A DNA stretch of 64,000 nucleotides from IMG/VR virus record IMGVR_UViG_3300034358_000008, positions 186,001-250,000 of that record; one strand, 5' to 3'. Position 1 is the first letter of the stretch. Each line of letters opens with the position of its first letter. Below, piece after piece: positions 6,877 through 10,390 of the stretch. The position numbers and the translations under genes were made by a program. Under the pieces are notes generated by a model. That model searched no databases, had not been told where the DNA came from, and saw only the letters and a list, made by a program, of their open reading frames with translations.

Positions 6877-7413
6877 ATGACCCAGCTCTTAGTCGTACCA
6901 GAAGCAGTTTACGATCAGTGGAAATCTGATGGTGTACTCTTCACACGTCTTTTAGACACCAACTATATAGCTAGCGTTAGTTCGGTTAACGATCTGGCGC
7001 AAATCGACTTAGCTATGAACCAATTTCCATTCGTGTTTGGCCCCGGTACAGGCGTAAGTCTGGCTGTTAGCCCACGAGCTGGCATTGCAATTGCATCGAC
7101 CGCAGATAACCTCGAACGGTTTAAGATGCAAGATTTGCATAATGCTTTAGAGGAACGTGTCGAAACGATCACGCTCCGTTTCACTAATGAACCAAAAGTT
7201 TGTAGTGAATATTCCCTTTATCCTGTAGATGAGAATCTTTGGGTTGCGGTGCAGAAGAGTCTGCCTATCACCAATAGCGATCCTGAACGGTTTACCTTGA
7301 TCAGTAACCGTACGTTCTTCGATAGTATGATTAATGAGTTGCTGAGAACTTGTAAATTAGAGCAAGTAGCATCAACGAATCTCTTCAACTATTATCTTAT
7401 GTCCAAGGTCTAG
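6877..7413 (+). CDS. Virion structural protein (phiKZ gp119-like)
   Basis: Synteny between helicase and MCP. Confidence 0.65.
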   Translation: MTQLLVVPEAVYDQWKSDGVLFTRLLDTNYIASVSSVNDLAQIDLAMNQFPFVFGPGTGVSLAVSPRAGIAIASTADNLERFKMQDLHNALEERVETITLRFTNEPKVCSEYSLYPVDENLWVAVQKSLPITNSDPERFTLISNRTFFDSMINELLRTCKLEQVASTNLFNYYLMSKV

Positions 7414-7487
7414 TTCCGGTGAAAAATAGGCCTGGACAATAGATACTCGTTTAAAACCAAAACCCATCCTGCGTAGGAAATTATTAG

Positions 7488-9707
7488 ATGAAAACTTTGA
7501 AATCTCTTCTGAAGGCTAGCGCCACAGATAAACCAGTCTTCTCCATGGAAGCATTCGTAAGCAAGCTGAACCTCGAAAACGATCTGGCCGATGGCGTGTT
7601 TAATACCGCAGCTGGTCTGGCCGCTACCGTAGGTCTGGAAAGCTTTGGTCAAAAGGATGACGCTCAAGCTGCGTCGAACGTATTCAAGACTCTGACTCAG
7701 ATGGCTACCAAGCTGGGCTTTGAGCAGTACATCTCCGAAGACGCTCGCGTTGCAGAGAACCAACTGACTGCTGCTTTCCTGGGTACTATTGCTGCCGCTA
7801 ACCCGGATCAGTACATCAAGGCTCTGCGTGGCCTGTCGAAGGTAATCCCTTCGAACGAAGCTATCAAAACCATCGAACACAAATTCGACGGTCCTGCCGG
7901 TTCCCTGCAAGTATTTGACGCTGAAGGCGCCAAGACCATGGGTCTGGAAAACTACAACGAGAAATCGCAACGTGACTTCCGTGTTGTAACCGTTGGTTAT
8001 AACCTGGCAGCTTCCCGTCAGGATGAGTTCTCCGAGCGCATCTACCCAACTACCGTTATCAACCCTATCGAGGGTGGTGTAGTTCAGGTACTGCCGTACA
8101 TCGCTGTAATGAAAGACGTCCATCACGCTGTTAACGGTGCTCGTTGGAAGAACGAAGAAGTGAACATGGTAGAAGCATACCGTGATCCGTCGATTCTTGA
8201 CGACAACGCTACTGATCTGATCGTTGCGATCGATCCAGCTGGTACCAACCTGGACTTCTTCGTTGACCCGGCTCTGATTCCTGCTGAGACCATTGTTAAC
8301 GAACAAAACCTGTCGATCGAAACCGCTCCTCTGAAGCCTGGTATTCGTATTGACCTGATCGGTAACTCCAACGCTAACCTGCTGATCTCGGCTGGCATGC
8401 TGGAAGTATCTGATACCATCGACCCTGCTGGTCGTCTGAAGAACCTGTACGTTAAGTTCCAAGGTAAAGTTGTTAAGTTCAAAGTTGACCGCATGCCTCG
8501 CGCTGTGTTCCAACCTGACCTGATCGGCGACACCCGTGGCGCACGTATCGACTTCTGGACTGATGATCTGAGCGTAAGTTCGATCACCCGTACTATCGAC
8601 GGCGTACAAACTGCTGCAATGCAAGAACTGACCCAGCGTGAATGGGTACTGCGTCTGAGCGTTGACTTCAGCGGTAACATCAGCACCTCGAAAGGTGACT
8701 CCCGCTTCAACAACGGTACTGCCGAAATCTCGGCTATCCTGAACTCTGACCGTCGTCCAGTAGATATGAAATCTGGCGCTGGTAAAGTTCTGGTTGATTC
8801 GATCACCGATCTGGAAATCGTTGGTTTCGACCTGCTCACTCGGTTCACCAACACTAACCGCCGTCAACGTGGTCACCTGTTGCAAACCCGTGCTCTGCAA
8901 TTCCGTCACCCAATCCCGATGCACGCTCCAGTGACTCTGCCACTGAGCACCATGGAAGATGAAGGTCCAGGCGAAGTTGTTAAAGCACTGACCGTGAACA
9001 CCAACATTCGTAACAGCAACAACGCTGTTAAGACTCTGTTGAACTACCTGGCTCAACTGCGTGAACTGACTGGTAATGGTTTCAACCGTCCAGTTATCAA
9101 CGTGTACGAAGGTGCGCTGGCCGCAGTAATGCGTCCTACCTACCACTTCGAACGCATGCACTTGCCAGACATGATCGATACCCTGAAGTCGAAAGATCGT
9201 TGGGACGACGTTTGCTCCGCTATCCTGAACAAAGTTAAAGGTGCGCTGTTCCCAGCCTACCGTAACTCGAACATCGAAGCTGCTTTCCGAGTGATCTCGG
9301 GCAACCAAGATGAGCGTCCAATGTTCCTGTTCTGCTCGGACAAAGAGATCGCCAACTACCTGATGACCAAAGGTGACGACCGTACCCTGGGTGCTTACCT
9401 CGAGTACGACATCGTATCGACCAACAACGAACTGTTCGACGGTAAGCTGGTAGTAGTACCAACCCGTAAGACCCCAGTAGAGAACGACATCCTGAGCTTC
9501 GGTCAGTTCTTCTACGTGTCGACTATCATCGCCGATCTTCCGATCAGCCGTGGCGGTCACCAGGTCTCCCGTGAGATCGCAGCCATTCCTTTCAACCTGC
9601 ACATCAACAACATTCCATTCGCACTGGAATTTGAAGTAACAGGCTTCCAGGAAGTAATGGGTCACTCGCAGTGGAACAAGCCCGTCGTTGACGGCCTGAA
9701 TGCCTGA
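7488..9707 (+). CDS. Major capsid protein (phiKZ gp120-like)
   Basis: 739 aa; strong codon bias; propeptide with SME/GLE sites; YNLAASRQDEFSERIYPT and NRRQRG motifs recognised from phiKZ-like MCPs. Confidence 0.92.
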   Translation: MKTLKSLLKASATDKPVFSMEAFVSKLNLENDLADGVFNTAAGLAATVGLESFGQKDDAQAASNVFKTLTQMATKLGFEQYISEDARVAENQLTAAFLGTIAAANPDQYIKALRGLSKVIPSNEAIKTIEHKFDGPAGSLQVFDAEGAKTMGLENYNEKSQRDFRVVTVGYNLAASRQDEFSERIYPTTVINPIEGGVVQVLPYIAVMKDVHHAVNGARWKNEEVNMVEAYRDPSILDDNATDLIVAIDPAGTNLDFFVDPALIPAETIVNEQNLSIETAPLKPGIRIDLIGNSNANLLISAGMLEVSDTIDPAGRLKNLYVKFQGKVVKFKVDRMPRAVFQPDLIGDTRGARIDFWTDDLSVSSITRTIDGVQTAAMQELTQREWVLRLSVDFSGNISTSKGDSRFNNGTAEISAILNSDRRPVDMKSGAGKVLVDSITDLEIVGFDLLTRFTNTNRRQRGHLLQTRALQFRHPIPMHAPVTLPLSTMEDEGPGEVVKALTVNTNIRNSNNAVKTLLNYLAQLRELTGNGFNRPVINVYEGALAAVMRPTYHFERMHLPDMIDTLKSKDRWDDVCSAILNKVKGALFPAYRNSNIEAAFRVISGNQDERPMFLFCSDKEIANYLMTKGDDRTLGAYLEYDIVSTNNELFDGKLVVVPTRKTPVENDILSFGQFFYVSTIIADLPISRGGHQVSREIAAIPFNLHINNIPFALEFEVTGFQEVMGHSQWNKPVVDGLNA

Positions 9708-9794
9708 GACCGAAAGGGCGGTTCCCGCTACTCCGAAGACGGTACAAGTCTGAGGTTTGATGAAAGCGGGGACTCCCGCCGACTAGAGCGGTGA
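9708..9794 (+). other. Putative in-frame readthrough extension of MCP (28 aa)
   Basis: DRKGGSRYSEDGTSLRFDESGDSRRLER then TGA; no ATG/GTG/TTG start; matches the C-terminus of 35969..36508. Confidence 0.65.
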
Positions 9795-9802
9795 CACTAG
9801 GT

Positions 9803-9836
9803 TATAGAGCCCCTACCAATCGGTAGGGGTTTTATG
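9803..9836 (+). terminator. Terminator of MCP transcript
   Basis: GCCCCTACC-AATC-GGTAGGGGT then TTTATG. Confidence 0.8.
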
Positions 9837-9860
9837 ACGTCTTGAGCTTAATAGAATTTA

Positions 9861-9877
9861 TTTCAAGTTTATATCAT
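9861..9877 (+). promoter_or_regulatory. phiKZ-type early (virion RNAP) promoter
   Basis: TTTCAAGTT-TATATCAT, resembling the phiKZ early consensus TATATTAC. Confidence 0.6.
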
Positions 9878-9919
9878 GCTTGGGTAATTACAATTAATGT
9901 TATCTAAAGGATTTATCGA

Positions 9920-10390
9920 ATGAGCTTTCTTTCCCGTTACTGGAATGCTGTTGAAAGACAACATACCGAAACTGGTATGAACCATGGTGACATTCGTGTG
10001 GATGTCAAACTCTTAAAAGAAAATACTCGGGTGAGTGATATTGTAGATCCCCAACCAACCCAACCTAAACCTCAAACCAACCGTCCTATCAAGGATGGAT
10101 CTATGCCCTCTACTAAATTTGAACGGGGGTCGGCTAGGCCGTACCAACGAGTTCAAGAAATGGCAGAAGATACACGGCCAATCCGCGAAGCGAAAGCTTC
10201 ACGAAACCGCAGTGTGGAAAACGAACGATCGGGGGGATCGGGTACAAGTGGTGATCAAACGAAAACGACCGCCAGGGAAGTTAAACGTCTTAGAAATAAG
10301 GCGTTGAAGAAACTAGGGGCTGGACGCAAAGTAAATGTCCAGTTAGATAAGGTAGTCATTGATGGACAATCTTGGCATCAAACGGCCTAA
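9920..10390 (+). CDS. Hypothetical basic, low-complexity protein
   Basis: AAGGA RBS; first gene after the early promoter. Confidence 0.7.
   Translation: MSFLSRYWNAVERQHTETGMNHGDIRVDVKLLKENTRVSDIVDPQPTQPKPQTNRPIKDGSMPSTKFERGSARPYQRVQEMAEDTRPIREAKASRNRSVENERSGGSGTSGDQTKTTAREVKRLRNKALKKLGAGRKVNVQLDKVVIDGQSWHQTA

Follow-up and report, generated by a model that had tools for sequence, protein, structure and literature searches.

A putative leaky UGA stop codon and a predicted stem-loop behind the major capsid gene of phiKZ-like Pseudomonas jumbo phages

Recoding at or near the end of a coat gene is a described route by which bacteriophages obtain a minor, C-terminally extended form of a capsid protein. 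In Qbeta (Allolevivirus), a leaky UGA ends the coat gene and a small fraction of ribosomes read through it, with Trp inserted by near-cognate tRNA-Trp, to give the A1 readthrough protein, a C-terminally extended minor capsid component. In the dsDNA phages T7 and T3, the minor capsid protein 10B is likewise an extended form of the major capsid protein 10A, and the extension is surface-exposed and dispensable. In several eukaryotic RNA viruses, readthrough is stimulated by a stable structure that starts about 8 nt after the stop and spans tens of nucleotides inside the extension ORF, as in the MuLV gag-pol pseudoknot or the 3′ stem-loops behind the UGA of alphaviruses and coltiviruses. Finally, bacterial SECIS elements are hairpins located immediately 3′ of an in-frame UGA, within coding sequence. 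The locus described here combines a UGA at the end of a major capsid gene, a short conserved coding extension and a stem-loop inside that extension, which together point to an unannotated, programmed readthrough form of the capsid protein in phiKZ-like jumbo phages.

The window, that is, the whole 64,000-nucleotide stretch of DNA that was analysed (positions 186,001 to 250,000 of IMGVR_UViG_3300034358_000008), is part of a 324,912-bp virus record that resembles the Pseudomonas phiKZ-like jumbo phages, the closest named relatives being Viktualia and 201phi2-1 at about 77% nucleotide identity. The ORF at 7488-9707 (+) comprises 739 codons (7488-9704) followed by a TGA stop (9705-9707), and encodes the major capsid protein, a homologue of phiKZ gp120 and 201phi2-1 gp200, as judged from about 77% nucleotide identity to the annotated major head protein genes of Viktualia and 201phi2-1. 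The gene shows a strong codon bias, with zero TTA, CTA or TCA codons. As a by-product of this bias, a codon-aligned 751-codon ORF is open on the minus strand (7410-9665), but it is not a gene. After the TGA the capsid frame stays open for 28 codons (9708-9791; DRKGGSRYSEDGTSLRFDESGDSRRLER), without any in-frame ATG, GTG or TTG, and ends at a second TGA (9792-9794).

An earlier note, made from the sequence alone, had described a long stem-loop at 9717-9780 that starts 9 nt downstream of the capsid UGA, and had proposed it as a cis-acting readthrough stimulator, considering selenocysteine insertion less likely for want of a clear SECIS geometry. The observation holds in full, as every coordinate and pairing given in it is correct. 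GGCG (9717-9720) pairs with CGCC (9777-9780), GTTCCCGCT (9721-9729) pairs with AGCGGGGAC (9765-9773) with one G-U pair, and AGAC (9737-9740) pairs with GTCT (9748-9751) across the loop GGTACAA to form an inner apical hairpin (9737-9751). RNAfold reproduces the hairpin, the 74-nt piece folding at -28.1 kcal/mol (z = -2.07, with 8 of 200 shuffles as good). The 141-nt context folds at -61.5 kcal/mol (z = -4.24), although much of that stability comes from a separate 17-bp terminator hairpin at 9801-9838, and in this longer context the lowest four pairs (GGCG/CGCC) compete with a small local hairpin (9777-9781 with 9789-9793). Taken alone, the hairpin is therefore only modestly better than chance, and its significance comes from comparison with relatives. 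The interpretation offered in the note is only partly supported, since its premise, that the UGA is a recoding site with translated sequence behind it, is strongly supported by comparative evidence, whereas a stimulatory role of the hairpin remains an inference.

The same region was collected from named phages and from IMG/VR and metagenome contigs, and a second IMG/VR scan with a profile returned the same 17 loci. In all 28 related genomes that carry the extension, the capsid gene ends in TGA and continues in frame for 26-30 codons with a recognisable peptide (G-x-x-R-Y-x-E-D-G-T-x-x-R-Y-x-E-D-G-x-x-R-R-L-E). These genomes span Phikzvirus, Serwervirus, Miltoncavirus, Phabiovirus, Pawinskivirus, Psa21-like phages and metagenomic relatives, and include fnug (species phiKZ), PhiPizzaParty, 201phi2-1, PhiPA3, Phabio, PA1C, HPP-Temi, BRkr, RVTF4, D6, Psa21 and Viktualia, although the sampling amounts to about 22 distinct sequences from one clade. 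The peptide comes in two subgroups. Subgroup A, which includes the window, reads G-K-G-x-x-R-Y-x-E-D-G-T-x-x-R-Y-x-E-[DS]-G-x-A-R-R-L-E-R, while subgroup B, formed by the Psa21-like phages, reads R-N-P-G-x-V-R-R-x-E-D-G-T-I-R-Y-x-E-D-G-T-T-x-R-Y-L-E. Among more distant chimalliviruses, LucasX, RSL2 and OBP end in TAA without an extension, and EL has TGA, but its open frame runs through its terminator and is taken as chance. The capsid gene of Escherichia phage Goslar ends in TGA followed by A, with 28 open in-frame codons before a second TGA (1577-1666 of the collected locus L031), but the peptide is unrelated and the phage collection contains no relative with which its conservation could be judged.

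The extension carries a coding signature. Frame 0 is open in 20 of 20 distinct sequences, while frames +1 and +2 carry stops in 20 and 17 of 20, respectively. dN/dS is 0.33-0.48 in frame, against 0.73 and 1.01 when the same alignment is read out of frame and 0.12-0.17 in the capsid gene body. One conserved Arg is written AGG, AGA, CGA or CGT in different phages, which is hard to explain without translation. The Leu-Glu near the end of the extension (9783-9788) is written CTA GAG (or TTA GAG/GAA) in nearly all relatives, and the conserved CTAG also supplies the +1-frame stop. Codon usage collapses at the UGA. Adaptiveness relative to the capsid gene's own usage is 0.255 for the extension, whereas the minimum for any 28-codon window inside the gene is 0.49 and the median is 0.77, and the extension uses AGG, GGG and CTA, which never occur in the 739 capsid codons. 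This fits much lower ribosome traffic after the UGA.

The identity of the first stop tracks the presence of the extension. In the 22 distinct sequences in which the first stop is always TGA, the second stop is TAA 15 times, TGA 5 times and TAG twice. Genome-wide, TGA ends only 70 of 285 long ORFs, against 166 for TAA. The base after the UGA is A in 15 and G in 7 of the 22 sequences, and never U or C, although U is the commonest base after TGA in this genome (23 of 70). Two relatives lack the extension and both end in TAA. One of them, L036 (metagenome contig RCUK01000188.1, 1401-1440), is nested in subgroup B as sister to Psa21 (support 98/89) and shows a deletion of about 56 nt that leaves only the last roughly 20 nt of the extension, out of frame. 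This is a secondary loss accompanied by a change from TGA to TAA, indicating that the extension can be lost in nature and may be dispensable. The other, the relative handled here as L038, also lacks the extension and has TAA.

The extension is part of the capsid mRNA region. In every locus the terminator lies after the second stop. In the window it is an intrinsic terminator hairpin with a U-tract (9801-9838), marking the 3′ end of the capsid mRNA, which a simple terminator scan did not flag because the U-run is partly absorbed into the stem. The hairpin at 9717-9780 is not itself an intrinsic terminator, as it is followed by GACUAGAGCGG and not by a U-tract. When contigs from four RNA-seq studies were compared with the equivalent region of a phiKZ-like genome, they ran through the TGA and the extension with no base change or indel there, and ended at or just before the terminator (2182-2184 in two runs, and 2218 at the U-tract in two), once followed directly by adapter sequence. 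As contigs can show neither translation nor strand, this only excludes editing and a transcript end upstream of the extension. The terminator and the AT-rich stretch behind it (9808-9888; TTTATG-N-CGTC, then a TATATCAT / TATATTAC-like motif) recur elsewhere in the phage genome (86979-87051, 209650-209681, 112445-112472 and 106450-106486 of contig G000:C1) and behind the capsid gene of relatives, and probably represent a terminator-promoter module of these phages.

Covariation of the structure across homologs, which the note had named as a check on its proposal, gave different outcomes in the two subgroups. In subgroup A, every sequence is predicted to form a long stem whose invariant GGG starts at column 12 of the alignment, 8 nt after the UGA, so that the spacer (9708-9716 in the window) is 8-9 nt. 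The 5′ arm lies at 9716-9729 (9717-9729 in the note) and the 3′ arm at 9765-9780, the consensus pairs joining 9716-9718, 9721 and 9723-9729 to 9765-9771, 9773 and 9775-9777, whereas the register and loop sequence of the apical hairpin are not conserved among relatives. Native sequences fold more stably than synonymous recodings of the same peptide, with a mean z of -1.5 under a conservative null and -2.05 under a uniform null, and 19 of 20 negative under the conservative one. Nevertheless, the recoded versions still fold at about -20 to -25 kcal/mol, and much of the structure is thus a by-product of Gly, Arg and Asp codons, since the R1/DG2 and DG1/R2 codons (CGN against GAC GGN) are intrinsically complementary. 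Native 5′ and 3′ halves fold better than chimeras between relatives (-27.2 against -24.6 kcal/mol, permutation p = 0.003). On the subgroup A consensus stem, 91.7% of cells pair, against 84.3% when shuffled (0/500) and 44-60% when slid; four pairs show changes on both sides, and the synonymous third positions of an Arg and a Gly codon change in step with their partners. The shuffle control, however, does not correct for relatedness, the two stricter measures reached only 48/500 and 13/500, and synonymous divergence in the extension is not lower than in the gene body. Subgroup B folds differently, into a CCGG/CCGG plus CCGUC/GACGG hairpin that starts 6 nt after the UGA, followed by a GGUACC-N7-GGUACC hairpin. 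Its pairing is 90%, but the pairs are almost invariant and show no covariation. A predicted RNA structure close behind the UGA thus occurs in both subgroups, but its architecture differs, and only subgroup A gives positive evidence of selection on pairing.

The explanation that we favour, with moderate confidence as a whole, is that the capsid UGA is a programmed leaky stop. In this model most ribosomes would terminate there, while a minority would insert an amino acid, most likely Trp through near-cognate tRNA-Trp(CCA) as in other bacterial UGA readthrough, and continue for 28 codons to the second stop, producing a minor capsid isoform with a short, probably beta-hairpin-like, C-terminal tail. 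The hairpin would stand at the ribosome's mRNA entrance when the UGA is in the A site, which is the geometry of known recoding stimulators, and may tune the balance between termination and readthrough. What the analysis itself establishes is the conserved UGA, the conserved, translated-looking extension, and the hairpin 8-9 nt downstream that co-varies in the window's subgroup; production of the extended protein, decoding by tRNA-Trp, the position of the hairpin on the ribosome, its stimulatory action and the location of the tail are all inferred. The parts of the model are not equally secure. Translation of the extension by readthrough is strongly supported on comparative grounds, selection on the hairpin as RNA in the window's subgroup is likely, and a stimulator role is plausible but tentative. 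Literature searches found no proteomic or Ribo-seq data on the extended protein. As far as we are aware, a downstream hairpin that stimulates non-Sec readthrough on bacterial ribosomes has no established precedent.

No tRNA is present in the window, and the tRNA cluster found outside it in the phage genome (G000:C1:41555-42802, minus strand) encodes tRNA-Trp(CCA), tRNA-Asn(GTT) and tRNA-Tyr(GTA), none with a UCA anticodon, which leaves the genome without a suppressor tRNA. tRNA-Trp is the usual near-cognate reader of UGA, and the phage copy has a C11-G24 pair in the D stem and G73, but Viktualia, 201phi2-1, PhiPA3, Phabio and PhiPizzaParty share the readthrough site and carry no tRNA-Trp, and therefore a phage tRNA-Trp cannot be a general requirement.

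Regarding the fate of the tail, the phiKZ capsid structure models the protein to its annotated C-terminus, residue 747, which counts against an extended form, with the C-terminal arms forming a six-helix bundle at the centre of each hexamer and reaching, in pentamers at the vertices, the outer-surface decoration protein gp244 (PMC11297242). A readthrough tail would then be expected to project from the capsomer centres. Pfam and PDB profile searches with the peptide found nothing significant. Only 1 of 19 peptides matched each of the RHS/YD and MORN beta-hairpin repeat families, at E = 0.071 and 0.015, which is a resemblance and not membership, and the motif occurs nowhere else in the six frames of the genome. 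AlphaFold2, run on the 30-aa PhiPA3 extension with 19 aligned sequences, gave a low-confidence beta-hairpin (pLDDT 58.7), which is a hint only.

Of the alternatives, the one that survives best, although we consider it less likely than the model above, is that readthrough is real but the hairpin is not its stimulator. Leakiness would then be set by the stop context alone, namely UGA followed by A or G with a small last residue (Ala, Pro or Gly), and the pairing would be mostly a by-product of the repeated R..DG codons or serve another RNA-level role, such as mRNA stability, processing or slowing of ribosomes. The strong folding of recoded peptides, the different architectures of the two subgroups, the lack of covariation in subgroup B, the unreduced synonymous divergence, and the fact that Qbeta-type UGA readthrough needs no hairpin are consistent with this view. 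On the other hand, the compensatory changes in subgroup A, some at synonymous sites, the advantage of native halves over chimeras and of native sequences over recodings, and the presence of a hairpin 6-9 nt after the UGA in both subgroups argue against it.

It is improbable that the region is untranslated and represents a structured 3′ UTR, or a 3′-UTR-derived small RNA made of the stem-loop plus the terminator, with peptide conservation as a side effect of RNA constraints. A roughly 100-nt two-stem-loop fragment of the PHIKZ298 3′ UTR, whose second stem may be the terminator, is documented in phiKZ (PMC8545117), the region here has the same stem-loop-plus-terminator layout, and codon usage in the extension is very poor. 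However, the open frame and the lowest dN/dS are specific to frame 0, the conserved Arg switches between codon families, residues are conserved in parts of the RNA predicted to be unpaired (E-D-G-T, R-L-E), and the invariant TGA, followed by a variable second stop, changes to TAA exactly where the extension is lost. A small RNA role could still coexist with translation.

Similarly unlikely is that the UGA encodes selenocysteine and that the hairpin is a SECIS bound by host SelB, in agreement with the low ranking given to this possibility in the note. The layout resembles that of a selenoprotein gene, with an apical loop about 33 nt after the UGA in the window, and some Pseudomonas hosts use selenocysteine. 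Nevertheless, an Rfam scan of 9500-10000 at E up to 10 gave only chance miRNA and snoRNA hits and no SECIS, the apical hairpin and loop are not conserved among relatives, subgroup B folds differently, and no relative has a Cys codon (TGT or TGC) at the site, those without TGA having TAA and no extension. It can also be inferred that a very highly expressed late mRNA would swamp the limited SelB pool. Lastly, independent production of the peptide by reinitiation or from a non-canonical start codon is very unlikely. In its favour, gene callers placed small ORFs over the end of the capsid gene and the extension in Viktualia (CDS0407, L001:1787-1885) and HPP-Temi (CDS0286, L083:660-803). However, the Viktualia ORF is in frame +1 instead of the conserved frame and is probably an artefact, the window's extension has no in-frame ATG, GTG or TTG, and conservation begins at the second codon after the UGA, always in the frame of the capsid gene.

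phiKZ and its relatives are the main models for jumbo-phage biology, including the phage nucleus, capsid trafficking and phage therapy of Pseudomonas, and their capsids have been solved at near-atomic resolution. Even so, in the deposited records examined the extension lies under no annotation or under a small ORF call, and full-text searches found no report of translational readthrough in phiKZ-like or other jumbo-phage capsid genes. If confirmed, the extension would add an overlooked virion component to a heavily studied model, and would be the first programmed stop-codon readthrough of a major capsid gene in a tailed dsDNA phage that we are aware of. It would also offer a natural site for low-copy peptide display on the capsid, much as T7 10B does, and a tractable bacterial system for asking whether downstream RNA structure can shift the balance between RF2 and near-cognate tRNA. 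It also shows that TGA-terminated phage genes with conserved downstream frames deserve a systematic comparative scan. A more far-reaching possibility, which we regard as tentative, is that phiKZ-like jumbo phages use a non-SECIS RNA hairpin to stimulate UGA readthrough on bacterial ribosomes, as a prokaryotic counterpart of the stem-loop signals of eukaryotic RNA viruses, to yield a low-copy capsid isoform whose conserved beta-hairpin tail would be displayed at capsomer centres and have its own function, for example in capsid trafficking or docking, adhesion or capsid stability.

Compared with the described systems, the locus shares with bacterial SECIS elements a hairpin immediately 3′ of an in-frame UGA, but it has no family match, no conserved apical loop and no Cys-containing homologues, and the extension, rather than a catalytic residue, appears to be what is selected. 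The geometry matches that of the readthrough stimulators of eukaryotic RNA viruses, but those act on eukaryotic ribosomes and eRF1, and an equivalent on bacterial ribosomes and RF2 is not established. The proposed outcome is that of T7 10A/10B, an extended minor capsid form in a dsDNA phage, but T7 uses a -1 frameshift and not stop-codon readthrough, and its extension is in another frame. The proposed mechanism is that of Qbeta A1, a leaky UGA at the end of the coat gene. Qbeta, however, is a small ssRNA phage whose extension is about 195 aa, whose A1 protein is essential, and in which no downstream hairpin is known to be required, whereas here the phage is a 325-kb dsDNA jumbo phage, the tail is 26-30 aa, a hairpin lies 8-9 nt downstream of the UGA, and at least one natural lineage has lost the extension.
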